The translations under genes were made by a program, and so were the position numbers. This document shows positions 1,075 through 34,251 of a stretch of DNA of 64,000 nucleotides, piece after piece (the first letter of the stretch is position 1; every line of letters starts with the position of its first letter). The notes beneath the pieces are model-generated. The model saw only the letters and a list, made by a program, of their open reading frames with translations. It had not been told where the DNA came from and did not search any database. The stretch covers positions 124,001-188,000 of IMG/VR virus record IMGVR_UViG_3300003877_000001; one strand, 5' to 3'.

Positions 1075-1102
1075 TGTAACCTTTTTCTTGCATGTTACGT
1101 AT
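1075..1102 (+). promoter_or_regulatory. ECF-like promoter TGTAAC-N17-CGTAT upstream of tRNA array 1 leader
   Basis: One of about 13 intergenic copies of the motif. Confidence 0.7.
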
Positions 1103-1128
1103 TTATAAACGATTTTTGTAAACAATTA

Positions 1129-1204: not shown

Positions 1205-1288
1205 ATGACAAAAGTTAATACATATAAGAAATATAAAAACTATCCAGATACTGGATCAGGTATTCTATGTACTAACTTTGGTGGCTAA
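1205..1288 (+). CDS. attenuator leader peptide MTKVNTYKKYKNYPDTGSGILCTNFGG (Tyr/Lys-rich)
   Basis: Hand translation; 1253-1270 is complementary to 1305-1322 (antiterminator). Confidence 0.75.
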   Translation: MTKVNTYKKYKNYPDTGSGILCTNFGG

Positions 1289-1310: not shown

Positions 1311-1344
1311 AAACCCTGATTCAGAAATGAGTCAGGGTTTTTTT
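1311..1344 (+). terminator. intrinsic terminator of attenuator 1
   Basis: AAACCCTGATTC-agaaat-GAGTCAGGGTTT followed by a T run, 10 nt before tRNA-Tyr. Confidence 0.85.
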
Positions 1345-1353
1345 ATGCCATAT

Positions 1354-1434
1354 TGTACGGTTGAACAGGTGGTGAGTTCCGCACACTGTAAATGTGCTGC
1401 TTCGGCTATGGGGGTTCGATTCCCTTCCGTACAA
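1354..1434 (+). tRNA. tRNA-Tyr(GTA)
   Basis: Acceptor TGTACGG/CCGTACA; anticodon arm GCACA-ctGTAaa-TGTGC; variable arm; TTCGA loop. Confidence 0.85.
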
Positions 1435-1618
1435 CAATTAACATTGTTAATTGAATTAGACTATATTAAAAAGTAATATAGTTCAAAAAACAATATTAAA
1501 ATTGTCATAGAATGGTACATGAAGGACTTATTGATAAAAATAATATAATTCCATTATCAGAATATTTACCTGATAATTGGAAAATTTATTATTATGGATA
1601 ATTTAAAATGATAAAATA

Positions 1619-1966
1619 ATGGTAAGGTTAAGTGAAATATTGCATGGAAGTGGTGTCTTTTCAAAAGACTTCAAAACTAGGATTGCCCAAAAGCAAATCA
1701 GAGTTAATGGAGAAACTATTGAAGGTGACATAGAGATTGACATAGATTTCATTCATAAGGATTTCTTTATGGATATTGGAGATTTAATGTTTAGCTTAAT
1801 GGATAGAGATATTTGGCAATTGCAGTTACAGATTTTCGGTATAGAAAATTTAGCAACATCAAATATTACCAATAGTTTAACTGAAGAATTAAGGAAGTTT
1901 CTAATGGTGAGAACTTCAAAGAAAAATGTTTTTGTAATTAAATTAAATGAAAAGCTGCTGAATTAG
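1619..1966 (+). CDS. S4-like RNA-binding domain protein (putative)
   Basis: N-terminus RLSEILHGSGVFSKDFKTRIAQKQIRVNGE resembles the S4 motif. Confidence 0.45.
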   Translation: MVRLSEILHGSGVFSKDFKTRIAQKQIRVNGETIEGDIEIDIDFIHKDFFMDIGDLMFSLMDRDIWQLQLQIFGIENLATSNITNSLTEELRKFLMVRTSKKNVFVIKLNEKLLN

Positions 1967-2163
1967 TTTGGATGTCCAAAGTAAAAACAAATGAATGGAT
2001 TGATAAAGTAAGAGCAAGATTAGGTGAACAAACACTTTTAAATGAATTTAATGGACAAAGAGATTTGTTCGAAGATAAAGAATTAATATAATGAGAACTA
2101 AATTTAAACATAAACAGTAGACCTTCTACATTTCCCCTTTCGGGTGTGTAGAGGTTCTCCTAT

Positions 2164-2236
2164 GCATCCGTAACTTAACTGGTAAAGTAGGTAACTCTTA
2201 ATTATCGAGATAAGGGTTCGACTCCCTTCGGATGCA
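2164..2236 (+). tRNA. tRNA-Lys(CTT)
   Basis: GCATCCG/CGGATGC; GGTAA-ctCTTaa-TTATC. Confidence 0.9.
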
Positions 2237-2398
2237 CAACACTACACATTGTGTAGTGTATCGCAAATCAAAATAAAAATTTTTAATTTGTTGATTATTA
2301 ATATATTATAATCAAATATCGTGTATTGCGATATGCGATATAGTAATAATTTGAGTAAAGTATTGTTTTTCGGTACTTATCTCTAAAAATTACTAAAT

Positions 2399-2481
2399 AC
2401 ATCGGTGGCAGAGAGGCTTATGCACCTGACTTTTAATCAGGGTTGTTCGCAACAACGTGGGTTCGAATCCCACCCGATGTA
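2399..2481 (+). tRNA. tRNA-Lys(TTT) with long variable arm
   Basis: ACATCGG/CCGATGT; CCTGA-ctTTTaa-TCAGG; V-arm GTTG-ttcg-CAAC. Confidence 0.85.
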
Positions 2482-2532
2482 CAATAATTATCTTTAAATT
2501 GTTTTAATTGTTACAATATAAAGATAAAATAT

Positions 2533-2605
2533 GCCATCATAACTCAATTGGTAGAGTATTCCGCTTTTAACGGAAGAGTTGAGGGTTCAAGTCCCTCTGG
2601 TGGTA
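2533..2605 (+). tRNA. tRNA-Lys(TTT)
   Basis: GCCATCA/TGGTGGT; TTCCG-ctTTTaa-CGGAA. Confidence 0.9.
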
Positions 2606-2654
2606 CTAGTTACTTTTGGTTTTTAAATAGTATTTATATTTAAAAGCTGATAAT

Positions 2655-14397: not shown

Positions 14398-14836
14398 TGA
14401 ATTAATTGATTATTATAAAAATAAATATGATGGTGAATTAATTATAAAATCAATTGAATACAAAACAGTATATATTAATGGAAATCATATTAAAAAATTA
14501 GAACATGTCTATGAAATTTATGTTCTTTTAGATTTATTAACCCCAAATGCAAATTCTTGGAATATTCCGAATTTTTTTAAAAGTAAAGTTTCTTTTGAAA
14601 ATGCAATTAAAATGTTTAAAGTTGCTGTAAATGGATATTTAGAAGCCTTATTAATTGAAAAAGAGTTTGTAGAAATAAGTTCAGAGAAAAGACTTTTAGT
14701 TGATTTATTATCAAAAGATATTAATTCTTTAAACGAAGAAGATTTTGATTTCATGATTTCACATTATCTAAAAATAGAAGAATATTTGAAAGTTCAAAAA
14801 TATGAAAATTTAAAAAAAAAATATTATGAAAAATAA
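14372..14836 (+). CDS. hypothetical protein
   Basis: 154-aa ORF overlapping the next start. Confidence 0.6.
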   Translation: MKNYEELTIELIDYYKNKYDGELIIKSIEYKTVYINGNHIKKLEHVYEIYVLLDLLTPNANSWNIPNFFKSKVSFENAIKMFKVAVNGYLEALLIEKEFVEISSEKRLLVDLLSKDINSLNEEDFDFMISHYLKIEEYLKVQKYENLKKKYYEK

Positions 14837-15734
14837 AAAAATAATTCTTCTCTGTGGAATCCCTGCTAGTGGAAAATCTACATGGGCAAATAAATTTATA
14901 TTAAATAATTCTAATTATGTTAGAATTAATAGAGATATGTATCGTTTAATGCTTGATGGTTCTCAAATAATGGATTTTAAGGGAGAAAAGTTAGTAACTG
15001 AATTAGTTAATAATGCAATTGTTTTGGCTACAAAGTCTAAGTATAACGTACTTGTTGACCAAACTAATGTTAACTTAAAGTACTTGAATGAAATGGTTGC
15101 ATTTTGTGAAAAAATTGCAGATGTTGAGTTTAAAATATTCGATATAACAGAAAAAGTCGCCATCGAAAGAGACTCAAATAGAGATGCTAAAGTAGGTGCA
15201 AAAGTAATCAAAAAAATGTACAAAAACTACTTAAATCTATTCTCTTCTAATTTCGATTTCTCAACAAGAAAAAGAAAACCACATATTGCTACCAACATCA
15301 AGTGGGAGCGTGATGGTACTTTACCAGATGCAGTGATTTTTGACATTGATAGTACTATAGCACATACTCAAGGTAAAAGAGGGATATTTGATTGGGATAA
15401 AGTTAATCTTGATATTGTAGATGAAATTGTTCTTGAAACAATTAAATCATATAAGGACTATGGTTATAAGATTATCTTTGTTACGGGTAGAGATGGTGTT
15501 TCACGAAAAATGACAGAAGATTGGTTAATACATAATAAAATACCTTTTGATATGTTATTCACTAAACCTAAAAATGATTTCAGAAAAGATATTATAAATA
15601 AAACAGAAATTTATCATAATTTCATTAAACCAAATTATAATGTATTAGCAGTTTATGATGACCGTAATTCTGTTTGTAAAATGTGGAGAAATTTAGGAGT
15701 AAAATGCTACCAAGTTCAAGAGGGTGATTTTTAA
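14826..15734 (+). CDS. pseT: polynucleotide 5'-kinase/3'-phosphatase
   Basis: P-loop GIPASGKST and RINRD; HAD FDIDST, VTGR, YDDR. Confidence 0.9.
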   Translation: MKNKKIILLCGIPASGKSTWANKFILNNSNYVRINRDMYRLMLDGSQIMDFKGEKLVTELVNNAIVLATKSKYNVLVDQTNVNLKYLNEMVAFCEKIADVEFKIFDITEKVAIERDSNRDAKVGAKVIKKMYKNYLNLFSSNFDFSTRKRKPHIATNIKWERDGTLPDAVIFDIDSTIAHTQGKRGIFDWDKVNLDIVDEIVLETIKSYKDYGYKIIFVTGRDGVSRKMTEDWLIHNKIPFDMLFTKPKNDFRKDIINKTEIYHNFIKPNYNVLAVYDDRNSVCKMWRNLGVKCYQVQEGDF

Positions 15735-16328: not shown

Positions 16329-17234
16329 ATGAGAGAAGAAATAAAAGAATATACAATCGGAGTTATAATTGGAAGATTCCAAATACATGAACTTCATGAT
16401 GCACATAAAGAGATGATTAGTGAAGTACTAAGTAGACACCAAAAGGTTATACTATTTTTAGGGGTATCACCTACATTATCAACAAGAAGAAATCCTTTAG
16501 ATTATCGCTCAAGAAAATTAATGATTGAAGAGATATATGGAAATGAAATGATTATCTTACCTATCAACGATAGAAAGTCTGATGAAATCTGGTCAGACCA
16601 AGTAGATAGTAAAATCAGAGAGGTAGAGCCAATTGGTTCTGTTGTATTATATGGATCAAGAGATTCATTTATTCCTCATTATAAAGGAAAGTATGATACT
16701 ATTGAATTAGTTCCTAAATCATTTATTTCTGCAAGCGAAGTAAGAAAAGAAATTTCTAAAAGAGTTGAAAGAAACAAAGATTTTAGAGCAGGAGTTATTT
16801 ACTCAACATATAATACATATCCAACAGTACATCCCGTTATAGATGTTGCCATTTTAAATGAAGATGCAACTGAAGTATTATTGGGAAGAAAAAAAAACGA
16901 ACAACTTTTTAGATTTGTTGGTGGATTTACCGATGTAACTGATGAATCGTATGAACAAACAGTTGTAAGAGAAGCACATGAAGAAACTGGTCTTGCTGTT
17001 GGTGATGTTAAATACATTACTTCAACAAGAGTAGATGATTGGAGATATAGATCAAATAATGAGCGTTCAGTAATGACTTCATTTTTCAAAGCAAAGAAAA
17101 TCTTTGGTATGGCAAAACCCAATGATGATATTGTAGCAGTTAAATGGCATCAAATTTATACTTTACGACCTAATGATGTTGTTGGTGAACACGAAAGATT
17201 GGTTGTTGCATTAAAAGAAAACTTAAAACTATAA
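16329..17234 (+). CDS. nadM: bifunctional NMN adenylyltransferase / Nudix ADP-ribose hydrolase
   Basis: GRFQ..H.AH, RNPL, ISASEVR; Nudix GGF..VREAHEETGL; DD. Confidence 0.9.
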   Translation: MREEIKEYTIGVIIGRFQIHELHDAHKEMISEVLSRHQKVILFLGVSPTLSTRRNPLDYRSRKLMIEEIYGNEMIILPINDRKSDEIWSDQVDSKIREVEPIGSVVLYGSRDSFIPHYKGKYDTIELVPKSFISASEVRKEISKRVERNKDFRAGVIYSTYNTYPTVHPVIDVAILNEDATEVLLGRKKNEQLFRFVGGFTDVTDESYEQTVVREAHEETGLAVGDVKYITSTRVDDWRYRSNNERSVMTSFFKAKKIFGMAKPNDDIVAVKWHQIYTLRPNDVVGEHERLVVALKENLKL

Positions 17235-17238
17235 AATC

Positions 17239-18726
17239 ATGAAAAATATAATAAATTTAATATTAAAAACAGATAGTTATAAATTAGGTCATTGGCAACA
17301 ATATCCAACAGGAATGAGAAAAGTGTATTCTTATATGGAAAGCAGAGGGGGTTTATTTCCTAAAACATTATTTACTGGATTAAACATTTATCTAAAAAAA
17401 TATCTCAAGGGTGCTGTTGTAACAATGGAAGATATTGATTATGCTGAAAAATTTACAGAAGAACATTTAGGTAGAAAACTATTTAATAGAGATAAGTGGG
17501 AATATATTGTTAAACGATATGGTGGTAAATTACCCATAAGAATTAAAGCAGTTAAAGAAGGTTCTTTAGTTCCAGTTAGTAATGTTTTATTGACAATAGA
17601 AAGTACCGACCACAATTGTTATTGGTTAACAAATGTTCTTGAAACTTTATTAATGAAACTATGGTATCCAACAACAGTAGCAACAAATGGATTTTATAGT
17701 AAACTTTTAATTAGTCAATATTTAAATAAAACAGCAGAAAACAAAGATTCTAATATTTGGAAATTACACGACTTTGGTTATAGAGGTGTATCTAGTGAAG
17801 AAACGGCAGGAATTGGTGGTATGGCACATCTTATTAACTTTAAGGGTAGTGACACCATTGAGGGAATTCTTTATGCTAGAGAGTATTATAATGAACATAT
17901 GGCAGGGTTTTCAGTTCCAGCGTCTGAACATTCAGTAGCATCTTCATTTGGTAAAGATTTCGAAGAAGAATATTTTTTAAATATGTTAAAACAATACCCA
18001 ACAGGTTTAGTATCAATAGTATCAGATACATATAGTGTTTTTAATTTTGTAGAAACAATGTCAACGAAATATAGAAAAGAAATCATAGAAAGAGATGGGA
18101 CTGTGGTATTTAGACCAGATAGTGGGCATCCTGTTGAAATAAACTCAAGACTGATTGATTTACTTTGGAATAAATTTGGTGGAACATATGTAAATGGTTA
18201 TAAATTATTAGATTCTCATGTAAGACTAATCCAAGGTGATGGTATTGACATTAAGATGATTAATGATATATTACATATGGGCGAACTTAAAGGATATTCT
18301 GCCGATAATTGGGTGTTTGGTTCAGGTGGTGCATTATTACAAAAGTGGACTAGAGATACTAATGAATTTGCAATTAAAGCATCCTATGGTGAAAGAGAAG
18401 TTGATGGAATTGTTAGTAAATTTTCAATAAGCAAAGACCCTATAACTTCTAAAAGTAAACGCTCAAAGGGTGGGATATTTAAATTAATACCAACAGAAGA
18501 TAGTTCATTCTTAACGATTTCATCTGAAAATTCAAAAGATAAAGGTACTTTTAGTAATTATGTTGATTGTTTAGATGTTGTATTTGAAAATGGTGAAATA
18601 AAAAGAGAGCAAACCATAGAAAATATTCGTAATATTGCAGATAATCATCTTGAAGTTGAATTAAAAGAAAATTACGATGTTATCGATAAACTAAATTTTG
18701 AAAAAAATTATGAAAAATTAAATTAA
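17239..18726 (+). CDS. nadV: nicotinamide phosphoribosyltransferase
   Basis: TDSYK..H, LHDFGYRG, PASEHS, VSDTY, RPDSG, IQGDG, FGSGG. Confidence 0.93.
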   Translation: MKNIINLILKTDSYKLGHWQQYPTGMRKVYSYMESRGGLFPKTLFTGLNIYLKKYLKGAVVTMEDIDYAEKFTEEHLGRKLFNRDKWEYIVKRYGGKLPIRIKAVKEGSLVPVSNVLLTIESTDHNCYWLTNVLETLLMKLWYPTTVATNGFYSKLLISQYLNKTAENKDSNIWKLHDFGYRGVSSEETAGIGGMAHLINFKGSDTIEGILYAREYYNEHMAGFSVPASEHSVASSFGKDFEEEYFLNMLKQYPTGLVSIVSDTYSVFNFVETMSTKYRKEIIERDGTVVFRPDSGHPVEINSRLIDLLWNKFGGTYVNGYKLLDSHVRLIQGDGIDIKMINDILHMGELKGYSADNWVFGSGGALLQKWTRDTNEFAIKASYGEREVDGIVSKFSISKDPITSKSKRSKGGIFKLIPTEDSSFLTISSENSKDKGTFSNYVDCLDVVFENGEIKREQTIENIRNIADNHLEVELKENYDVIDKLNFEKNYEKLN

Positions 18727-18743
18727 AAATTAAATTAAAAATT

Positions 18744-19940
18744 ATGAATTATCAAAATATACAATATAAACCATCTACATTGAATGCAATAATAAATGCA
18801 TTCAATGCTAAAAATTTACGTAATTGGAATGTATTATATTTTTACTTTGATATACACCAAACAATATTATATCCTGACTATAATAATGAAGAAGAATTAA
18901 AATTCTATCCATACATAAAAGAAATATTACAACATCTAAGTAAACAAAATGATATTGTACTTGGAATTTATACGTGTTCATATCCTGATCAAATAAAAAA
19001 ATATTTTAAATTTTTTGAAAAAAATAATATTAATTTTAAATATGTAAATAAAAATCCAGAAGCAATGAATACAAAATATGGGTATTATGTAGATAAACCA
19101 TATTTTAATGTCCTTTTTGACGATAAATGCGGTCTAAATGCTGAGATTGATTGGTATTTCATTGCAGAATATTTTGGTTTAATTAATAATTCTAAAAATG
19201 ATTATTATGTGTATGTATATCTCGATCCAAGAAAAAGTGGCTTTTATAATTCAGAAAGTTTCATTTTCCCAAACGAACCCTTTTATGTTGGTAAGGGTAA
19301 AAATAATAGACATTTTGACCATTTAAAAGAATCCGAACTGAACAAAGAAAACGGTAATATTATAAAACAAAGAAAAATAAAAAAAATATTATCATTAAAT
19401 AAAACTCCTATAATATATAAAATATTTGATAATGTTAACGAAAATTTTGCATACCATGTTGAAAATTTATTAATCCTAGATATTGGTAGAGTTAATAATA
19501 AAACAGGTGTTTTAACTAATCTAAATGACGGTGGATATGGTAACAAAAATTGTGCAATAACCAATAAAACAAAAGAAAAAATTTCTAAGTCGTTAAAAAA
19601 TTATCATATAAATAATCCTATTAGTGACGAAACTAAACAAAAAATTGGTGATGCTAATAGAGGTAGAAAATATTCTAAGGAATATATTAAACATCTTAAA
19701 GAAATAAGAAAAGGAACAAAAATTACCCATAGAAAAAAATATTATTTAATATCACCAACAAATGTTAAACATTCTTTTATAGGTAAAGATAGATTAATTG
19801 AATTTGTTAAAAAGGAAAATTTATCATATATAATTTTAATGAAAAAAATAAACAGTGGAAAAATTTTAAATTCCGATATTTTAAGAAAAACTCAACAAAC
19901 ATTAAATTCAATTGGGTGGGAAATAATAAAATCAAAATAA
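18744..19940 (+). CDS. HAD-like domain fused to GIY-YIG-like/NUMOD3 endonuclease
   Basis: N-terminal FDIHQTI..KPYFNVLFDDK; then YYVYVYLDPR..FYVGKG..R, LTNL.DGG, ETKQKIG. Confidence 0.7.
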   Translation: MNYQNIQYKPSTLNAIINAFNAKNLRNWNVLYFYFDIHQTILYPDYNNEEELKFYPYIKEILQHLSKQNDIVLGIYTCSYPDQIKKYFKFFEKNNINFKYVNKNPEAMNTKYGYYVDKPYFNVLFDDKCGLNAEIDWYFIAEYFGLINNSKNDYYVYVYLDPRKSGFYNSESFIFPNEPFYVGKGKNNRHFDHLKESELNKENGNIIKQRKIKKILSLNKTPIIYKIFDNVNENFAYHVENLLILDIGRVNNKTGVLTNLNDGGYGNKNCAITNKTKEKISKSLKNYHINNPISDETKQKIGDANRGRKYSKEYIKHLKEIRKGTKITHRKKYYLISPTNVKHSFIGKDRLIEFVKKENLSYIILMKKINSGKILNSDILRKTQQTLNSIGWEIIKSK

Positions 19941-20239: not shown

Positions 20240-20258
20240 AAAATACTTGCATGTTTGA

Positions 20259-20285
20259 GTAACCTTTTTTACTTTTGCTACGTAT
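20259..20285 (+). promoter_or_regulatory. ECF-like promoter GTAAC-N17-CGTAT for tRNA array 2
   Basis: Recurrent motif. Confidence 0.7.
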
Positions 20286-20329
20286 TTATGAGAAACCAAA
20301 AAGGTTTAACAAATTATAAAAGAATAAAA

Positions 20330-20455
20330 ATGAAAAATAACAATACATATATTAGTCGAATTTCGAATCTACTCACATCGAGTATATGTGGGAATGGTAC
20401 GTTTAATGGTAGACGTGCTAAGATCGGGTCTAATGTTGATATTGTAATTTCATAA
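20330..20455 (+). CDS. attenuator leader peptide MKNNNTYISRISNLLTSSICGNGTFNGRRAKIGSNVDIVIS
   Basis: Codons mirror the downstream anticodons; 20421-20438 is complementary to 20473-20489. Confidence 0.8.
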   Translation: MKNNNTYISRISNLLTSSICGNGTFNGRRAKIGSNVDIVIS

Positions 20456-20477
20456 AATATAATATAAACAAACAACA

Positions 20478-20511
20478 GAAACCCGATCTCATAAAGAGTT
20501 CGGGTTTTTTT
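20478..20511 (+). terminator. intrinsic terminator of attenuator 2
   Basis: AAACCCGATCTC-ataaa-GAGTTCGGGTTT followed by a T run. Confidence 0.85.
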
Positions 20512-20602
20512 ATTGTTAAAAATGAACAAAAGAGTTTATTTAAAGTTTGATGTTTTAAATAGTGTGGGTACTGACGTATCAGGTAAATGCCCACACTAAT
20601 TA

Positions 20603-20677
20603 GGTCTTGTTAGTTTAGTTGGTTATAATACCACACTGGTACTGTGGAGACTGCGGTTCGAATCCGCAACAGGACTC
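20603..20677 (+). tRNA. tRNA-Thr(GGT), atypical
   Basis: GGTCTTG/CAGGACT; CCACA-ctGGTac-TGTGG. Confidence 0.65.
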
Positions 20678-20807
20678 TTAATAAAAAGTTATTTGACGTA
20701 TTGAACATTAAATGAAATGAAAACTAAGTGAAATTTTAATGTTATTTAGTTTTCAAAAATAATCTATTTTAAATCAGTTTTTATTTCATTTCGTAATATT
20801 TATTATT

Positions 20808-21492
20808 ATGAAATGGAATAAAAACGAAATAGATTACTGTAAAGAAAAATTTTCTAATGGAGAATCTCTAATTGATATTAGTAATGAATTAAATAGAACA
20901 ACAAAAGCAATTCAAATTAAAATGAGTCGATTAGGTGTTTTTAGACCACAAAAAAAATATTATATGACCTATATTTGTGGAAATTGTAAAACAACATTTA
21001 CTGCATTAATAAGTGAGAAAAGAAAATATTGTTCTGAACAATGTGCATCAATAATAAATAATAAAAAAAGAAAAAAAATGTAAACGTTGTAAGCAAACAA
21101 TTAATAATAATAATAACATTTATTGTAGTAAAAAATGTGAAATGTCAAACAAAGAAAATTATTATTTTACTAAAATAGAAAATAATGATTTAAATGATAT
21201 TAATCATAATACAGCAGAAAGATGGGTTAAAAGATATTTAATTCACAAATATGGTGAAAAATGTATGAAATGTGGTTGGAGTGAAATTCATAAAATAACA
21301 AAAAAAGTGCCGATCCAATTAAACCATATTAATGGTGATTCAGATAATAATAATTTATTAAATGTTGAGTTACTTTGCCCTAATTGTCATTCATTAACAC
21401 ATAATTTTGGATCATTAAATTTTGGTAATGGTAGAACAAAAAGAAAATTAGAGAGAAATAAAAGATATAAAAAAGTTAGCGTGTCCGATTGA
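20808..21492 (+). pseudogene. HNH endonuclease split by a frameshift in an A-run (ORFs 20808-21083 and 21142-21492)
   Basis: Second frame is open from 21079 (CKRC..YCSKKC); QLNHING..N...LLCPNCH; stop codon lies inside tRNA-Cys. Confidence 0.7.
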
Positions 21493-21545
21493 TAAGGTGG
21501 ATGGTTGCAACCCATTTTATGCAGGTTTGAATCCTGTCGCTAACT
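21475..21545 (+). tRNA. tRNA-Cys(GCA)
   Basis: GTTAGCG/CGCTAAC, U73; GATGG-ttGCAac-CCATT. Confidence 0.85.
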
Positions 21546-21665
21546 CTAATTATACCGAATTCGGTATAAATAAAATCATAGTAATGTAATGACCTCAAAA
21601 GTCATTTTGTTACTATGAATAAACATCGGGGATGATATACTATTTTATCGTAGTACCCCGTCCAT

Positions 21666-21737
21666 GCGAATATAGTATAATGGCTATTATATGATCCTTC
21701 CAAGTTCGAGATGTCGGTTCGATTCCGACTATTCGCT
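21666..21737 (+). tRNA. tRNA-Gly(TCC)
   Basis: GCGAATA/TATTCGC, U73; loop ctTCCaa. Confidence 0.85.
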
Positions 21738-21807
21738 CAAAGTTGCTATTCATATCTACTTAATGACTTCATAAGTCATTTCAATGATACAAATAACAAC
21801 AAAACAT

Positions 21808-21890
21808 GCCCTATTGGTGGAACAGTAGACACGCTGGTTTTAGAAGCCAGTGTCAGAAATGGCGTGTAGGTGCAAATCCTACATAGGGTA
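21808..21890 (+). tRNA. tRNA-Leu(TAG)
   Basis: CTGGT-ttTAGaa-GCCAG; long V-arm. Confidence 0.88.
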
Positions 21891-21951
21891 CTAATAACGT
21901 AAAATATAATTTACAATAACATACATAATTGTAAATTATATTTAATCATAT

Positions 21952-22034
21952 GCCCATATGATGGAACGGTAGACATGCCACACTAAGAACGTGGTGTTAG
22001 AAATGACGTGTAGGTTCAAATCCTACTATGGGTA
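21952..22034 (+). tRNA. tRNA-Leu(AAG)
   Basis: GCCCATA/TATGGGT; loop ctAAGaa; long V-arm. Confidence 0.82.
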
Positions 22035-22146
22035 CAATCCTGAGTACAGGTTAACTCTGTGATGTTGTGTGACATATAAGTTTAGAGGTTGAGAAATCAA
22101 TACGGCTTCAATGAGAGAATAACGTAATTTATTCAAAGTCACAATT

Positions 22147-22218
22147 GCTCTTGTAGTTCAACGGTTAGAATATGTGGCTTATATCCACCAGACGAAGGTT
22201 CGACTCCTTCCAAGAGTA
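22147..22218 (+). tRNA. tRNA-Ile(TAT)
   Basis: GCTCTTG/CAAGAGT; GTGG-ctTATat-CCAC. Confidence 0.8.
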
Positions 22219-22224
22219 CTAAAG

Positions 22225-22297
22225 GATGGTGTAGCACAAAGGCAGGTGCACTTGACTGTTAATCAAGAATATGTGGGTTCGACCCCCACCGCCATCG
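22225..22297 (+). tRNA. tRNA-Asn(GTT)
   Basis: CTTGA-ctGTTaa-TCAAG; G73. Confidence 0.88.
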
Positions 22298-22302
22298 CAT
22301 AT

Positions 22303-22374
22303 TGTCTCGTAGTATAACGGTTAGTATAATTGCCTGATACGCAATAGATAAGGGTTCGATTCCCTTCGAGACTA
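22303..22374 (+). tRNA. tRNA-Ile(GAT)
   Basis: ATTGC-ctGATac-GCAAT. Confidence 0.85.
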
Positions 22375-22436
22375 CAAAAATTAATTAAAACCTTTAACGA
22401 ATCGAACTTTTTTTATTTTTTTCAGTATTTATATAT

Positions 22437-22850
22437 ATGAAAAAAACATGTACTATTTGTAATATAAAAAAAGATTTTGAAGAATTCTCTTGGAGAAATA
22501 AAAGTAAAAATATTAAACATTCACAATGTAAAGATTGTAAGAAAATTATCGATAATAAACATTATAGTGTTTCGAAAAAAAGAAGAGAAGATATTAGAAT
22601 TAGGTCAAAAATTCATTATAATTTTCTTAGAGAATATATAAAAAGATTAAAATTATTTGGCGAATGTAATGTGTGTGGAGAAAAAAGATGGTATGTTTTA
22701 GATTTTCACCATATAAATGAAAAAAATGAAAATATTAGTTTTTTAGTTAAAAGTGGAGTATCTATTTTTACATTAAAATCTGAAATTAGAAAATGTGAAT
22801 TGGTTTGTTCTAATTGTCATAGAGAAATCCATCATTTTAAAAAAAAATAA
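22437..22850 (+). CDS. HNH endonuclease with Zn-finger (same family as 2655-3092)
   Basis: CxxC; LDFHH...EIRKC.LVCSNCH. Confidence 0.8.
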   Translation: MKKTCTICNIKKDFEEFSWRNKSKNIKHSQCKDCKKIIDNKHYSVSKKRREDIRIRSKIHYNFLREYIKRLKLFGECNVCGEKRWYVLDFHHINEKNENISFLVKSGVSIFTLKSEIRKCELVCSNCHREIHHFKKK

Positions 22851-22853
22851 TTT

Positions 22854-22925
22854 GGGATAGTAACTCACTGGTAGAGTGTCGTTTTGAAGCAGCGAAGGTA
22901 GTAGGTTCGATTCCTACCTGTCCCA
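22854..22925 (+). tRNA. tRNA-Phe(GAA)
   Basis: GGGATAG/CTGTCCC; TCGTT-ttGAAgc-AGCGA. Confidence 0.8.
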
Positions 22926-22982
22926 CAAAGGATGTTTCTTTTATTGAAAAATGATATCAAAGTAAATGAAAGCTAAGTCCAT

Positions 22983-23055
22983 AGTGATGTAGTTTAGAGG
23001 TCAAAACGCCACTCAGAGATAGTGGAAATCGGTAGTTCGATCCTACCCATCACGA
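22983..23055 (+). tRNA. tRNA of undetermined identity (loop caGAGat, A33, short V-arm)
   Basis: GTGATG/CATCAC; CCACT/AGTGG; T-arm GGTAG-ttcgatc-CTACC. Confidence 0.55.
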
Positions 23056-23061
23056 CTAAAA

Positions 23062-23146
23062 GCCGATTTCGCATAGTGATCGATTGCACTGGTCTTGTAA
23101 ACCAGTAGGTTTATACCTCACGTCAGTTTGAATCTGACAATCGGCT
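23062..23146 (+). tRNA. tRNA-Thr(TGT) with long variable arm
   Basis: GCCGATT/AATCGGC; CTGGT-ctTGTaa-ACCAG; V-arm AGG-tttata-CCT. Confidence 0.82.
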
Positions 23147-23174
23147 CAAAAAATTGACTCAATGAGTCAAATAT

Positions 23175-23248
23175 TGTCTCGTAGTTCAACTGGTGAGAGC
23201 ACCACGCTGATAACGTGGAAGTTATGGGTTCGAATCCCATCGAGACAA
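23175..23248 (+). tRNA. tRNA-Ile(GAT)
   Basis: TGTCTCG/CGAGACA; CCACG-ctGATaa-CGTGG. Confidence 0.9.
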
Positions 23249-23321
23249 CTTCATAGATGCAGGTTCGAATCCTGTCTCTTCCTTCGGGGAGTGTGGTGTA
23301 ACTGGAAAGCATAATGGACTT
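23249..23321 (+). ncRNA. circularly permuted tRNA-like RNA (3' half, TTCG, 5' half)
   Basis: TTCAT-agat-GCAGG-ttcgaat-CCTGT-CTCTTCC-ttcg-GGGAGTG-tg-GTGT-aactggaaa-GCAT-a-ATGGA-ctt. Confidence 0.75.
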
Positions 23322-23411
23322 AGAGGGTTGGCAGAGTCTGGCTTATTGTACTAGTCTTGAAAACTAGCATACGTTCATAGCGTATCGTGGGTTCGAATCC
23401 CACACCCTCTG
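23322..23411 (+). tRNA. tRNA-Ser(TGA)
   Basis: AGAGGGT/ACCCTCT, G73; CTAGT-ctTGAaa-ACTAG; long V-arm. Confidence 0.9.
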
Positions 23412-23416
23412 CATTT

Positions 23417-23489
23417 GATTTGGTAGTAATAATGGTAAAACGTCAGCCAGTTAAGTTGATAGATGTAGGTTCGAATCCTACCCAAATCG
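23417..23489 (+). tRNA. tRNA-Asn(GTT), A33 variant
   Basis: GATTTGG/CCAAATC, G73; TCAGC-caGTTaa-GTTGA. Confidence 0.7.
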
Positions 23490-23562
23490 CAAACAAATGT
23501 TTTATTGATAAATAAATATTTTGTTAACGTATAAGTAGACGTACTTATATAGGAGTTGTTTT

Positions 23563-23632
23563 ATGTAAATAGCATAATGGCAATGCAGCACCATAAAAGG
23601 TGTGTATGTAGGTTCGATTCCTATTTTACTAA
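23563..23632 (+). pseudogene. degenerate tRNA (6-nt anticodon loop)
   Basis: D- and T-arms present; GCACC-ataaaa-GGTGT; mispaired top of acceptor. Confidence 0.5.
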
Positions 23633-23650
23633 AACAACTATAACAATTAT

Positions 23651-23723
23651 ATTTTCGTAGTTCAATGGATAAGAACATACAAGTGCGAATTGTAAGATAT
23701 GGGTTCGAATCCCATCGAAAATA
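23651..23723 (+). tRNA. tRNA-Arg(GCG)
   Basis: ATTTTCG/CGAAAAT; TACAA-gtGCGaa-TTGTA. Confidence 0.8.
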
Positions 23724-23771
23724 CTATTTTTTTAAAATTGAAACGTATTTATATGTATAAGCGTTTTAATT

Positions 23772-24461
23772 ATGATTAAATATGAAAAAAAAAGATTAGA
23801 ATTAATTGTTTCTAAATCAGAAACATATAGACAGGTATTGTTAGCATTTGAACGAAACACTTCATCTGCATCATATAAAATTTTAAAAAGAAAATTAAAA
23901 GAATGGAATATTTCCATTGATCATTTTCTTTCTAGTAAAGATGTTGTACATAAATTACAAAAAGAGGGTAAATTAATAAAATATTCTGATGACGATATTT
24001 TTAAAAAATCTAATATTGGTAGAGGTACTGTTAAGAAACGATTTTTAACGAAAGTAGAAAAGAAATGTGTTTTATGTGGGCAAGATGAAAATTGGAATGG
24101 CATGAAAATATCTTTAATAATGGATCATAAAAATGGAATTAATATTGATCATAGATTTGAAAATTTAAGATTACTTTGCCCTAATTGTAATGCAGGAATA
24201 CCTACACATTGTAAAGGTAATATTGGTATTTTAAATAATATAAACAAACAAATTAAATTAAACAATAAAATAGATAAAAGAACCTTATATAATGGAGTTG
24301 GAAAACCTAAACAACGCAAAGTTGAAAGACCATCATACAATGAATTAATTAAAGATATTAACAATTTAGGATATTTAGGTACTGGTAGAAAATACGGTGT
24401 TAGTGACAATTCTATTAGAAAGTGGAAAAATTTTTATGAAAAACAAGCCTCTATGGTGTAA
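23772..24461 (+). CDS. HNH endonuclease with C-terminal HTH
   Basis: CVLCG..MDHKNG..NLRLLCPNCN; GRKYGVSDNSIRKW; 3' end overlaps tRNA-Arg. Confidence 0.85.
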   Translation: MIKYEKKRLELIVSKSETYRQVLLAFERNTSSASYKILKRKLKEWNISIDHFLSSKDVVHKLQKEGKLIKYSDDDIFKKSNIGRGTVKKRFLTKVEKKCVLCGQDENWNGMKISLIMDHKNGINIDHRFENLRLLCPNCNAGIPTHCKGNIGILNNINKQIKLNNKIDKRTLYNGVGKPKQRKVERPSYNELIKDINNLGYLGTGRKYGVSDNSIRKWKNFYEKQASMV

Positions 24462-24518
24462 AGGATAGCATTATTGTCTTCGAAACAAAAGGTCAGGGTT
24501 CAAATCCTTGTGGGGGTA
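24447..24518 (+). tRNA. tRNA-Arg(TCG)
   Basis: GCCTCTA/TGGGGGT; TTGT-ctTCGaa-ACAA. Confidence 0.82.
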
Positions 24519-24523
24519 CAATT

Positions 24524-24565
24524 GCGAGTGTGGTGCTAACGGTAACACATTTCCAATCACTCGCT
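24524..24565 (+). pseudogene. internally deleted tRNA-Gly (acceptor + D-arm only)
   Basis: GCGAGTG/CACTCGC-T with a D-arm and TTCCAA remnant; no T-arm. Confidence 0.55.
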
Positions 24566-24633
24566 CAAATAATATTTCAGCTAGATGAAATTTAAATGTG
24601 GAAACTACGTAACGGTTTAAACAGTTATTTAAT

Positions 24634-24707
24634 GCGAGTAACGCATAAATGGTGGTGCACCTGCTTGCCAAGCAGGAATAGAGTCGGTTCAATCCCGATT
24701 ACTCGCT
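24634..24707 (+). tRNA. tRNA-Gly(GCC)
   Basis: GCGAGTA/TACTCGC; CCTGC-ttGCCaa-GCAGG. Confidence 0.88.
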
Positions 24708-24772
24708 CTAATTCAAGTGTTTAATGATTGCAAATCATAGCAGACCTTCCAAGTCATGGCTTGAGTTTTTAT

Positions 24773-24844
24773 GGTGCAGTAACTCAGGGGTAGAGTGGTT
24801 GATTGAAGATCAACTGGACGTTGGTTCGAATCCAACCTGCACCA
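24773..24844 (+). tRNA. tRNA-Phe(GAA)
   Basis: GGTGCAG/CTGCACC; GTTGA-ttGAAga-TCAAC. Confidence 0.9.
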
Positions 24845-24849
24845 CAAAC

Positions 24850-24922
24850 AGGGGATTAGTGTAATGGATTAGCACATGATTCTTCTAAAATTAGAGTATG
24901 AGTTCGAATCTCATATCCCCTA
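24850..24922 (+). tRNA. tRNA-Arg(TCT)
   Basis: AGGGGAT/ATCCCCT; TGATT-ctTCTaa-AATTA. Confidence 0.82.
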
Positions 24923-24989
24923 CTATGGTTGTTCGATTATACTTTCAAGTATTTTTTATGCATTAGTTAGAAGTAGAGCAAGAAGTAAA

Positions 24990-25100
24990 GCAAAAAAATT
25001 AGGTATGAATAAATGTGTTATATGTGGTTATGATAAACAATGAAAGTAATTTAATTCCTTTGTGTCGTAATGATCATTGGGAATATGATTATAATATGTT
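24990..25100 (+). pseudogene. HNH endonuclease remnant
   Basis: NKCVICGYDKQ* ... NLIPLCRNDHWEYD. Confidence 0.55.
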
Positions 25101-25113
25101 AAATATATAATAT

Positions 25114-25185
25114 GTCCGTATGGTGTAACGAATAGCACATAATGCTTCTAACATTAGAGTCGGGGTTTGATTCCCTGTACGGATA
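25114..25185 (+). tRNA. tRNA-Arg(TCT)
   Basis: GTCCGTA/TACGGAT; TAATG-ctTCTaa-CATTA. Confidence 0.82.
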
Positions 25186-25317
25186 CAAAGTCACGTTAAG
25201 TATGATTTAATGAATAAAAGGACAAGGGTTAACACTTGGTATGTGAGATAATCACATTTTACTGGACTTTTTTTGGAAATTTTGTAACATAAATACATTA
25301 TATGCGTATAACAGCAT

Positions 25318-25734
25318 ATGCCATCAGGAAAAACACATGATATTAGCTCAATAGCATTATTGCCGATTTTATTAATTGGGTTATACTATCTTAAATTGGA
25401 AACTTTACCAATAATTCTAATAATTATAGGGTATTTATTTTCTAGTTTTATGTTTAATGGAGATTTAGACATTAATAGTAGACCATACAATAGATGGTTA
25501 TGGTTAAGAATAATATGGTTACCATACCAAGGATTTTTTTCACATAGAAGTATATGGACACACGGTATTATTATTGGAACAGTAGTAAGGTTACTATATA
25601 TTTCACCAATATTAATACCAATTACAACATATTTTAATTATATAGATTATATAACAATAGAACAAACATTATTTATAGTATTAGGATTAGAATTAGGTTC
25701 TTCATTACATTCAATAATGGATTATTTGTTTTAA
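25318..25734 (+). CDS. DUF2227-like membrane metal-binding protein
   Basis: MPSGKTHD, DLDI.S, W.PY..F.HRS..THG. Confidence 0.75.
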   Translation: MPSGKTHDISSIALLPILLIGLYYLKLETLPIILIIIGYLFSSFMFNGDLDINSRPYNRWLWLRIIWLPYQGFFSHRSIWTHGIIIGTVVRLLYISPILIPITTYFNYIDYITIEQTLFIVLGLELGSSLHSIMDYLF

Positions 25735-25775
25735 AGTAATTTAAAACAAATATTATATAAAACATAAAATAGTGT

Positions 25776-26300
25776 ATGGAATTTAATGAATCAAAAAAAT
25801 CGGGAGATATTATTGAAGAAGAAGTATTAAAAATAATACATCAAAAATATCCTAAAGCAGAAACAACTAAACACTTAGGTAAATTTAGTGATTATGATAT
25901 TTGGATACCTGAAATTAATGATGGTATTGAAGTTAAGGGTGATTATATGTCAGCTAAAACAGGTAATCTTGTTATTGAAGTAGAAATGGGTAGTAAATTA
26001 TCTGCACTGTCAGTAACAAAAGCAAAATATTGGGTTTTTGTTGAAGGGTATAGATATATTTGGATAAGTCCATTAGATATTTATCGTTTTCTTGAACAAC
26101 ATCCATATAATAGAGTACCATTTATTGGTAAAGGTGATACTACTGAAAAATTTGCGTATTTAGTTTCACATAGAAGATTTTGTGATTATGTACTTCAGGT
26201 TGGTAGAATAGAATTTATAGATAAAAATTCTCCATTATATTTCGATAGTTTTAGTAATATGGATGATGAATTAAAATTAAATAATAAAATAAAGCCATAG
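25776..26300 (+). CDS. PD-(D/E)XK nuclease-like protein
   Basis: YDI...IEVKGD..TGNLVIE. Confidence 0.65.
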   Translation: MEFNESKKSGDIIEEEVLKIIHQKYPKAETTKHLGKFSDYDIWIPEINDGIEVKGDYMSAKTGNLVIEVEMGSKLSALSVTKAKYWVFVEGYRYIWISPLDIYRFLEQHPYNRVPFIGKGDTTEKFAYLVSHRRFCDYVLQVGRIEFIDKNSPLYFDSFSNMDDELKLNNKIKP

Positions 26301-26318
26301 GTATTTATAAAATAAAAT

Positions 26319-26405
26319 AGAGGATTGGCAGAGTGGTAATGCAGTAGTTTGCTAAACTATACATCGTGTAAAAGCGGTGCGTGGGTTCGAGTCCCACATC
26401 CTCTA
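26319..26405 (+). tRNA. tRNA-Ser(GCT)
   Basis: AGAGGAT/ATCCTCT; GTAGT-ttGCTaa-ACTAT; long V-arm. Confidence 0.88.
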
Positions 26406-26625
26406 CATGAAAAATAATATTCAATACGTTGATTATAATGAAGCTCAATTTAGATACATGGATAAACTCTATGGTATGAATAAACCACAAAGTTTTATAA
26501 AAAAACTAATCAATGCAGCCAAAGAAAGAGGTAGATTAACAAAAGACCAAGACTATTACTTAATGTACTATCTACAAAAGGGTCAAACACCTTATGATGC
26601 AAAACTCTTGCCAAACAATATATAA

Positions 26626-33716: not shown

Positions 33717-33786
33717 GTTGCCATAGGTTGGTGTAAAATATTAGTCTCTAAAACTAATAACGAGAGTTCGAATCTCTCTGGCAGCA
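33717..33786 (+). tRNA. amber-suppressor tRNA (anticodon CTA)
   Basis: GTTGCCA/TGGCAGC-A; TTAGT-ctCTAaa-ACTAA; GAGAG-ttcgaat-CTCTC; weak D-arm. Confidence 0.78.
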
Positions 33787-34251
33787 CTTAAATATTAAAA
33801 ATATGAAAGATAATGTAGAATATAAAATAGTTTCTAGTGATTCAACTGATTTCATGGGAAATAGAGTAAGTAAATTAATGTCAGAGGGTTGGGTATTATA
33901 TGGAAGTCCATATTTTAATAGTCAAAAAGAATCTAATTGTCAAGCAATGGTTAGACACCCAAAAACTAAAGAAATTTTAAACGATTAACATGTCAAAAGT
34001 ATATGTTGATTTAAGAGTAGAAGCATTTGAAGAAGATTTAAATGATTTTCTAACATTATTAGGAAAAATTAATTATACAGGACGTATTGGTGCAAGCAGA
34101 AGCATTAAAGTAAATATTGATGGTGATGGTTCTGGTTATATTGGTGTTAAAAGACTAAGTGATAAAAAACCAATACATGAATGGGTAAATTTAGATGAAA
34201 AACAATTAAAAAAAGTGTCTGACGGTGAAGACTTTGACGACCATTATATAG

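Follow-up and report, generated by a model that had tools for sequence, protein, structure and literature searches.

Candidate leader-peptide attenuators in front of the tRNA arrays of a large phage

Ribosome-mediated transcription attenuation controls the amino-acid operons (trp, his, leu, thr, ilvGMEDA and pheA) and pheST of enterobacteria. In these systems, a short translated leader is rich in codons for the relevant amino acid or acids, the antiterminator and terminator hairpins are mutually exclusive, and a ribosome stall in the leader favours read-through. Some leaders report on more than one amino acid, such as thr (Thr and Ile) and ilv (Ile, Leu and Val), and pheST shows the same logic applied to a translation-apparatus gene. 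T-box riboswitches also control translation-related genes through an antiterminator/terminator choice, but sense tRNA status by directly binding one uncharged tRNA, through a specifier codon and the T-box sequence, without translation. Among tRNA genes themselves, the supernumerary long array (trn operon) of Anabaena sp. PCC 7120 is silent by default, is induced when translation is impaired, and is linked to HNH endonuclease and RNA-repair (rtcB) genes (PMC8421152). In phages, encoded tRNAs replace host tRNAs that are depleted or cleaved, and are documented to counter tRNA-targeting defences (PMC10264068, PMC11555353, PMC11464382). Here we describe a large phage in which each tRNA gene cluster sits behind a small predicted leader gene written in the codons that the cluster's own tRNAs read, followed by a predicted terminator/antiterminator switch. 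This suggests that the phage most likely makes these tRNAs only when decoding of those codons runs short. Attenuation is a known mechanism, but our literature searches found no description of it applied to tRNA arrays.

The analysed window is a 64,000-nucleotide stretch of IMG/VR record IMGVR_UViG_3300003877_000001 (positions 124,001 to 188,000), and it contains two such units, which we call D and C. Their features, in window coordinates, are as follows.

20247..20289 (+), promoter of unit D: -33 TTG (20247-20249), -7 box TACTTTTG (20270-20277, Bacteroidota TAnnTTTG type), then conserved ACGTATTTAT at the likely transcription start
20330..20455 (+), leader ORF D, 41 codons plus stop (TAA at 20453-20455)
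20336..20416 (+), sensing run of leader D, codons 3-29
20421..20438 (+), 5' arm of the antiterminator of unit D, inside codons 31-36, complementary to 20473-20489, with a core of 9 perfect pairs (20421-20429 with 20481-20489)
20479..20511 (+), intrinsic terminator of unit D: 11-pair stem with one U-U mismatch (20479-20507), 5-nt loop, T7 run (20505-20511)
20604..26406 (+), tRNA array D: 22 tRNA genes for Thr, Cys, Gly, Leu (CUN readers only), Ile, Asn, Phe, Ser and Arg, plus an odd tRNA-like gene at 23562, with interspersed HNH homing-endonuclease ORFs and other ORFs
1076..1106 (+), promoter-like motif of unit C: GTAACC, 15 nt, then ACGTATTTAT
1205..1288 (+), leader ORF C, 27 codons, with the run YKKYKNY at 1223-1243
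1250..1269 (+), 5' arm of the antiterminator of unit C, pairing with the terminator 5' arm and flank (about 1307-1324)
1311..1344 (+), intrinsic terminator of unit C (13-pair stem, T7 run)
1354..2606 (+), tRNA array C: Tyr-GTA, Lys-CTT, Lys-TTT, Lys-TTT

The original prediction had proposed, from the sequence alone, a leader that lists the anticodons of its downstream array, and this observation is confirmed. Every element lies at or within one base of where it had been placed, and the leader ATG is at 20330 rather than at the implied position of about 20331. ARAGORN finds 21 tRNAs in array D, and the Cys-GCA tRNA that had also been counted is real but is found only by Rfam, at 21475-21545. 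The array therefore encodes exactly the nine amino acids named (T, C, G, L, I, N, F, S and R), apart from the odd tRNA-like gene. As had been proposed, leader codons 3-29 use only these nine amino acids plus one Tyr, such that 26 of 27 codons name amino acids of the array, and every codon/anticodon pairing that had been listed is correct under standard wobble rules. The run uses rare codons (CGA, TCG, CTC, CTA, ACG, GGG and CGT), each of which is read by a tRNA of the array. The unit at 1205, which had been put forward as an internal replicate, is also real.

The match in unit D is far beyond chance. Of 40 leader codons, 33 name amino acids of the array against an expected fraction of 0.50 (p=2e-5), and at the codon level the match is 32/40 against 0.43 expected (p=1.4e-6), while the other two reading frames give 0.55 and 0.38. 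In addition, 16 of the 17 array anticodons have a cognate leader codon, and keeping the peptide while resampling synonymous codons gives P=0.014. The unit at 1205 is weak on its own (7/26 against 0.16 expected, p=0.10) and becomes convincing only with its two homologues, the Lys/Tyr-rich leaders of L127 and L128 (labels beginning with L denote our comparison loci), which precede Tyr and Lys tRNAs. Two more units lie upstream in the same phage. The four leaders enrich for their own arrays only, with in-set fractions of 0.61, 0.50, 0.50 and 0.90 for the matched pairs, and together the four leader/array sets cover all 20 amino acids. The division extends to isoacceptor families, as leader A, one of the upstream pair, uses TTA, TTA and TTG ahead of an array with Leu-TAA and Leu-CAA, whereas leader D uses CTA and CTC ahead of an array with Leu-TAG, Leu-AAG and Leu-GAG, in a genome that uses TTA for 63% of Leu codons.

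A lack of leader/array correspondence in relatives had been named in advance as an outcome that would count against the idea, and we find the opposite. Relatives with 57-91% identical NAMPT keep the promoter, ORF, antiterminator arm and terminator, and their leader composition follows their array content. The design is kept in L122, L123, L124, L127, L128, L209 and L216, with ORF length and position conserved in 6 homologues, and the promoter arrangement of unit D recurs before leader C, before leader A and in L122, L123, L124 and L127. L124 lacks Leu tRNAs and has no Leu codon in its sensing run. Unrelated phage contigs carry leaders with quite different amino-acid sets that match their own arrays (S/L, P/R/H/Q/L, N/H/W/S/I/M/R, D/F/G/H/M/N/R/T/V, F/M/R/S/W and F/H/P/Q/T), as do three units in the cultured Cellulophaga phage Calle_1.

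Over 22 pooled units, 289 of 484 codons ahead of the antiterminator arm (0.60) are in the array's set against 0.29 expected, compared to 0.32 against 0.25 for the arm and later codons (Fisher combined p=1.6e-39), indicating that the enrichment is confined to codons upstream of the arm. It is also specific to the reading frame, with 0.48 in frame against 0.25 and 0.22 in the other frames over 19 units. Many of the pooled units are homologous and so are not fully independent, and a few show no overall enrichment (L077/L090, L032 and L029), though L029 and L077 have arrays cut by the locus end. In the permutation of leaders against arrays, swapping leaders between arrays never reached the observed match in 100,000 trials. 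The proposed codon-level barcode holds as coverage, as 134 of 137 array anticodons are addressed by the leaders whereas synonymous resampling gives 121.1 +/- 3.0, with 0 of 20,000 resamplings reaching the observed value. As a simple preference for decodable synonymous codons, it is only weakly supported (z=2.0).

The RNA elements following the sensing runs are consistent with an attenuator. The antiterminator duplex of unit D is predicted at -16.1 kcal/mol against -9.3 +/- 2.1 in shuffles, and that of unit C at -20.5 kcal/mol (z=-5.8 against shuffles). Equivalent arms, inside the 3' third of the ORFs and always just 3' of the sensing run, are significant in 18 of 22 units (z of -2 to -6), and L124 carries two compensatory pairs. 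GC-rich stems followed by T7 runs are found at 20479-20511 and 1311-1344, and in all relatives. When folding is modelled with ribosome footprints, the terminator 5' arm is sequestered (P 0.6-0.9) with the A site on sensing codons, and this drops to 0-0.3 once the ribosome covers the arm. At equilibrium, however, the terminator wins in almost every unit whatever the ribosome position, so the switch must be kinetic. With our assumed footprint, a ribosome at the stop codon no longer covers the arm in several units, including unit D, and termination therefore depends on timing or on trailing ribosomes. For a hairpin equivalent to regions 1:2 of trp, which would synchronize ribosome and polymerase, the evidence points neither way, as two internal hairpins are predicted in class-D leaders but with little covariation, and without any ribosome the antiterminator is mostly predicted to form, leaving no clear trp-like superattenuation hairpin. 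A promoter-like motif at 23743 inside array D may let distal tRNAs escape control.

We consider it likely that each unit is a ribosome-mediated transcription attenuator placed in front of a tRNA gene array. In this model, transcription starts at a host-type (Bacteroidota-like) promoter and enters a short leader ORF, the first two thirds of which is written almost entirely in codons read by the downstream tRNAs, with at least one reporter codon for nearly every anticodon. The last third contains an 8-12 nt arm complementary to the 5' half of an intrinsic terminator that lies 20-30 nt past the stop codon. If all listed codons are decoded quickly, the ribosome would run onto the arm while RNA polymerase is making the terminator, so that the arm cannot pair, the terminator hairpin forms, and the array is not transcribed. 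If decoding of any listed codon is slow, because a tRNA is scarce, cleaved, uncharged or out-competed, the ribosome would wait upstream of the arm, and the free arm would capture the terminator's 5' half as it emerges, allowing polymerase to read through into the array. The output, more of exactly those tRNAs, would relieve the stall, making the circuit a negative-feedback controller of decoding capacity that in this phage is split into four regulons.

The attenuator interpretation given with the original prediction is thus supported. Our analysis shows the anatomy and its conservation, the frame-specific and position-specific codon match, and the co-variation of leader with array and of arm with terminator. 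In contrast, translation of the leader, conditional termination and the direction of the switch are inferred from sequence, as neither leader translation, termination at 20511 and 1344, read-through nor its dependence on charged-tRNA supply was measured here, and transcription-translation coupling is assumed for the unknown host. The data do not distinguish loss of a host tRNA from general supply-and-demand feedback as the physiological trigger.

A narrower version of this explanation, and the one originally proposed, is that the attenuator serves counter-defence, acting as an OR-gate alarm that detects cleavage or depletion of any one host tRNA by anticodon nucleases or similar defences and switches on nuclease-resistant replacements. 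This is possible but tentative. The near-complete listing of array anticodons is what a surveillance list would need, the arrays sit among tRNA-repair genes (Rnl1, PNKP and Tpt1), and a cellular look-alike in a gammaproteobacterial genome lies next to rtcR behind a sigma-54-type promoter. However, the sensor cannot tell cleavage from scarcity, lack of charging, or the demand of an AT-rich phage on a host tRNA pool, and coverage of all 20 amino acids also fits plain supply control. No defence system is known for this phage, and its tRNA anticodon loops were not compared with host tRNAs for changes that would resist nucleases. It is unlikely that the leaders instead sense amino-acid starvation, with the arrays as co-transcribed passengers or part of a starvation programme. 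Uncharged tRNA would also trigger such a switch and the architecture is that of the amino-acid operon attenuators, but the regulated genes are tRNAs rather than biosynthetic enzymes, more tRNA does not cure amino-acid starvation, and amino-acid sensing requires neither the isoacceptor-level match (Leu UUR against CUN) nor the near-complete anticodon coverage.

We regard as very unlikely an untranslated RNA-only switch, in which the conserved sequence binds a factor or a tRNA directly in a T-box-like manner, or is simply the terminator of the upstream gene followed by an unrelated small ORF. The leader RNAs are strongly structured (z=-5.4 and -6.7) and no Shine-Dalgarno sequence precedes the ATG, although its absence is normal for Bacteroidota. 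Against this reading, the enrichment exists only in the ORF's reading frame, the ORF is kept with similar length and stop position in all homologues while amino-acid substitutions stay inside the array's set, and a promoter lies between the upstream gene and the leader. Chance coincidence might be entertained because the amino acids of array D make up half of the proteome and because the unit at 1205 is not significant alone, but it is rejected by the pooled match, the cross-pairing permutation, the four mutually exclusive sets within one genome, and the recurrence of the design in unrelated phages.

Compared to described systems, these units show no sequence membership in a known family. In the Rfam search, which includes the His, Leu, Thr, Trp and Phe leaders, PyrR and the L10 leader, only tRNAs pass the gathering threshold in the window, and in permissive mode the scores against the gathering cut-offs are 18.9/55 for Phe_leader, 17.9-21.9/55 for Thr_leader, 15.1/41 for Trp_leader and 28.1/54 for PyrR. 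No T-box (RF00230) hit is found at the gathering threshold or at E<=10, and the signal here is instead the frame-specific codon content of an ORF. The Anabaena trn operon is a cellular rather than a phage array, and is regulated at the promoter through direct repeats taken to bind a repressor, with no mention of attenuators, leaders or terminators in that report (PMC8421152). The work on phage tRNAs and tRNA-targeting defences concerns, judging from titles and abstracts, what the tRNAs do, and was not examined for how their expression is controlled. Relative to the leader-peptide attenuators of enterobacteria, there is no clear 1:2 anti-antiterminator, and the regulated genes are tRNAs themselves, in a virus. 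Up to nine amino acids and 17 anticodons are listed in one leader, and nearly every downstream anticodon has a reporter codon.

The analyzed sequence is part of a 325,854-bp phage contig (IMGVR_UViG_3300003877_000001) with a G+C content of 27%, in which the tRNA genes are surrounded by genes for tRNA repair and translation-related functions. These include the end of a T4 Rnl1-type RNA ligase (69-668), a polynucleotide kinase-phosphatase (PNKP, 14826-15734) and, just upstream of the window, Tpt1 and an IF3 homologue. More broadly, the regions 69-668, 4821-8483, 14826-15734, 16329-18726 and 18744-19940 contain the tRNA-repair genes (Rnl1, PNKP), NAD-salvage genes (NadR-like and NAMPT), a ribonucleotide reductase with an intein and LAGLIDADG domain, and a GIY-YIG homing endonuclease. 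In addition, HNH endonuclease ORFs sit between tRNAs at 21142, 22437 and 23772.

The leader, antiterminator, terminator and tRNA array reported in the original prediction are present in the sequence, and that observation is confirmed. The window contains two such units, here called C and D. Their elements, and other features of the window, are as follows:
1205-1288, leader ORF of unit C, containing the run YKKYKNY
1311-1344, terminator of unit C, followed by Tyr-GTA, Lys-CTT and two Lys-TTT tRNAs
20330-20455, leader ORF of unit D, from ATG 20330 to TAA 20455, 41 sense codons
20421-20429, segment perfectly complementary to 20481-20489
20481-20489, 5′ half of the terminator of unit D
20479-20507, stem of that terminator
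20505-20511, T-run of that terminator
20604-26406, tRNA array of unit D, in which ARAGORN lists 21 tRNAs
21475-21545, Cys-GCA tRNA of the same array, added by Rfam
23562-23633, tRNA-like gene whose anticodon loop has 6 (or 8) bases
23743-23752, conserved ACGTATTTAT motif inside array D
23772-24461, HNH endonuclease ORF just downstream of that motif
33717-33787, solitary tRNA with anticodon CTA and no leader ORF

Codons 3-29 of leader D use only N, T, I, S, R, L, C, G and F, plus one Y, and with the Cys-GCA tRNA included the array encodes exactly these nine amino acids with 17 distinct anticodons. ARAGORN cannot name an anticodon for the tRNA-like gene at 23562-23633, and similar odd members of unknown function occur in the arrays of two related loci (L122 10439-10509 and L209 at about 7383). 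Unit C is equally real, and both leader RNAs are far more structured than shuffled controls (z=-5.4 and -6.7).

To determine whether the correspondence could arise by chance, we used the codon usage of the long ORFs in the window as background. In unit D, 33/40 codons fall in the amino-acid set of the array against 0.50 expected (p=2e-5), and 32/40 codons are decodable by the array under strict wobble against 0.43 expected (p=1.4e-6). The leader uses rare codons, with CGA accounting for 5% of Arg codons, TCG for 3% of Ser, CTC for 2% and CTA for 10% of Leu, ACG for 5% of Thr and GGG for 8% of Gly, and each of these is read by a particular tRNA of the array. When the peptide was kept and synonymous codons were redrawn from genome usage, only 1.4% of draws addressed 16 of the 17 anticodons, as the real leader does. 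Unit C alone is weak (7/26, p=0.10).

The motif originally proposed as a promoter recurs before both window leaders, before leader A (one of two further leaders of this phage, described below) and before the leaders of relatives. It consists of TTG, about 20 nt, a TAnnTTTG-like box and a conserved ACGTATTTA. TTG and TAnnTTTG are the -33 and -7 boxes of Bacteroidota promoters, and together with the absence of Shine-Dalgarno sequences this points, by inference, to a Bacteroidota host. The recurrence of the ACGTATTTAT motif at 23743-23752 may represent an internal promoter that lets the distal tRNAs (Arg-TCG onwards) be made independently of the attenuator.

A lack of correspondence between leader and array in relatives had been named in advance as an outcome that would refute the prediction, and this outcome was not observed. 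Related loci were collected using the neighbouring NAMPT gene as an anchor. A search with the single NAMPT protein returned only the contig of the window itself, whereas an alignment recovered syntenic loci with 57-92% identical NAMPT. Six of these loci (L122, L123, L124, L127, L209 and L216) all have a 41-47-codon ORF followed by a terminator in front of an array of the same kind. Amino-acid substitutions between these leaders stay inside the set of the array; for example, the single Y of the window leader is N in L122. The array of L124 has lost its Leu tRNAs and its sensing run has no Leu codon, although it keeps two Phe codons without a Phe tRNA in view. L127 and a further locus, L128, carry Lys/Tyr-rich leaders in front of Tyr and Lys tRNAs. 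The antiterminator arm also changes together with the terminator, as seen for AGATCGGGT/ACCCGATCT in the window, ATGTCGGG/CCCGACAT in L124 and an 11-bp pair of quite different sequence in L128. Covariation within the homologous class-D leaders is modest because the core of the arm is nearly invariant, and the stronger evidence comes from unrelated units, each with its own matching arm. The design is not universal, as distant NAMPT-carrying phages with large arrays (L164, L180, L200 and L204) show no such leaders.

Walking upstream of the window revealed two further leader/terminator/array units in the same phage, about 15-20 kb upstream (L296 2902-3021, and L290 836-919 on the minus strand, in the numbering of two retrieved loci), with sets A, E, L, V, W, D, M and P, Q, H. 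Leader A contains the run MEAMLWSVAEAVEVDDL and precedes Ala, Glu, Leu-CAA, Val, Trp, Asp, Met and Leu-TAA tRNAs, while leader B is divergent, contains the run QPQPQHQHQ and precedes Pro, Pro, Gln and His tRNAs. With C (K, Y) and D, the four sets cover all 20 amino acids, and each leader is enriched only for its own set. Leucine is split by codon family, with leader A using TTA, TTA and TTG ahead of its arm and leader D using CTA and CTC, which matches the Leu isoacceptors in each array. A sister assembly of the same phage (metagenome 3300003876) has a 32-nt deletion inside leader A (L290 4196 compared with L296 2923-2954), which shifts the frame so that the ORF stops after 12 codons, well before the antiterminator arm. 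This is either a natural regulatory variant or an assembly error.

To search for unrelated examples, a pipeline requiring a terminator, a short ORF ending just upstream of it and a tRNA within 300 nt was run over all retrieved loci. A terminator-motif scan of viral contigs, which had looked too generic to find the rest of the phage contig, yielded about ten independent units when run through this pipeline. The further units lie in contigs of 14-149 kb, and each leader mirrors its own array. These arrays are Ser/Leu; Pro/Arg/His/Gln/Leu; Asn/His/Trp/Ser/Ile/Met/Arg; His/Phe/Met/Asn/Asp/Thr/Gly/Val/Arg; Ser/Phe/Met/Arg/Trp; and Pro/Phe/His/Thr/Gln. In addition, the cultured Cellulophaga phage Calle_1 (MT732432.1) has three units, and one of its leader runs, RLLHQEPLEQLRLP, is 14/14 in the set of its array (Pro, Glu, Gln, His, Leu, Arg). 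The paper describing Calle_1 only counts its tRNAs (PMC8776804).

Over 22 units, codons ahead of the arm are 60% in the set against 29% expected, whereas codons in and after the arm are 32% in the set against 25% expected (Fisher combined p=1.6e-39). Over 19 units, the in-frame fraction is 0.48, while the +1 and +2 frames give 0.25 and 0.22 and the expectation is 0.26. Several units are homologous, and where two ORFs ended near a terminator one was chosen by eye, a choice that is covered by the frame control. Randomly re-pairing leaders with arrays never reached the observed excess in 100,000 trials. At the codon level, a simple preference for synonymous codons reaches only z=2.0, and coverage is the informative test. 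Of 137 distinct array anticodons, 134 have a cognate leader codon, while synonymous resampling gives 121.1 +/- 3.0 and 0 of 20,000 draws reach 134.

Our folding analyses provide a rationale for how these units most likely work. In 18 of 22 units, an 8-12-bp complement of the 5′ arm of the terminator lies in the 3′ third of the ORF, immediately after the sensing run. When the complete terminator was folded at equilibrium, it was the stable state in almost every unit, as in classical attenuators, so that the choice must be kinetic, and most units showed no ribosome-dependent switch. We rejected this as the wrong model because the choice is co-transcriptional, and instead folded the nascent transcript up to the end of the terminator 5′ arm with a 30-nt ribosome footprint placed at each codon. 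In this model, the arm is sequestered (P 0.6-0.9) while the A site is on the sensing codons and is released (P 0-0.3) once the ribosome covers the arm, with the boundary coinciding with the end of the in-set codon run. Without a ribosome the antiterminator mostly forms, indicating that the default would be 'on' and that fast translation would turn the array 'off'. A stall at any listed codon would keep the array on and the tRNAs produced would relieve the stall, making the unit a negative-feedback controller. Whereas the elements and their codon correspondence are read directly from the sequences, these mechanistic steps are inferred from sequence and folding only, and neither the operation of the switch nor its natural trigger was examined experimentally. 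Within these bounds, the interpretation offered originally, that a ribosome stall before the antiterminator switches on the array, is supported at the level sequence analysis can reach.

The CTA-anticodon tRNA at 33717-33787 is of the amber-suppressor type and is labelled Pyl by ARAGORN, which raised stop-codon recoding as an explanation, but the ORFs of the window fit the standard genetic code and treating TAG as sense adds only two long ORFs. The tRNA-Phe gene pheV of E. coli was considered as a case with an attenuator-like leader, but the K-12 sequence upstream of pheV has no leader ORF or terminator. Among a sample of 120 bacterial loci with the same terminator motif, there was one clear cellular case and one doubtful one. 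The doubtful case is in Acinetobacter genomes (L326 and L379), where a 20-21-codon ORF with three Asn codons and a terminator precede an array of four Asn tRNAs, and this evidence is too weak to call. The clear case lies in a bacterial chromosome (L360 3115-6615; MABD01000055.1, Gammaproteobacteria bacterium 45_16_T64), where rtcR is divergent from a sigma-54-like promoter (TGGCAC, 5 nt, CTGCA) followed by a 51-codon ORF, a terminator, and Ser, Ile, Leu, Pro, Trp and Gln tRNAs. In this ORF, 32/50 codons are in the set S, I, L, P, W, Q (p=2.5e-6), and it looks like a cellular, RtcR-linked version of the same design. RtcR is annotated in Pfam as the regulator of the RNA-repair rtc genes. RtcR responds to tRNA damage. 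This hints that such arrays answer tRNA damage, though it is a single case with a somewhat different spacing.

It is tempting to speculate, tentatively, that these units reflect a general and so far unrecognised principle, in which many phages and at least one bacterial RtcR-linked locus split their tRNA genes into regulons, each guarded by a translated leader that is a near-complete codon-by-codon list of the anticodons of the regulon. Such a leader would work as a multi-input OR-gate that detects shortage or destruction of any single decoder, for example by host anticodon nucleases, and answers by transcribing exactly the replacement set. The finding would give a simple, sequence-readable mechanism by which viruses measure decoding capacity codon by codon and top up only the tRNAs that are short. 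It bears on why phages carry tRNAs, which has been debated for 50 years (PMC10264068), on how phages cope with tRNA-cleaving defences, and on how tRNA arrays are organised, here as four regulons covering all 20 amino acids. The idea is directly testable, as a cultured phage-host pair (Cellulophaga phage Calle_1 and Cellulophaga sp. HaHa_2_95) has three such units, and the leaders could also serve as natural, modular sensors of the availability of single tRNAs.

The proposed mechanism is ribosome-mediated attenuation, which is already known, and what is new is its use before viral tRNA arrays, with leaders that list nearly every downstream anticodon. Full-text literature searches found no description of attenuators before tRNA genes or arrays, although most subscription journals were outside their reach and a prior description is not fully excluded. 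The elements are not members of any Rfam family, with only sub-threshold resemblances to the Phe, Thr and Trp leaders, and they are not T-boxes. The nearest known regulated tRNA array, the Anabaena trn operon, is controlled at its promoter, and the study describing it states that mechanisms of differential tRNA gene regulation are largely unknown and presents its promoter-level mechanism as the first indication of how tRNA genes are regulated (PMC8421152). The logic of the units described here is instead that of leader-peptide attenuation, as in trp, his, thr, ilv, pheA and pheST.
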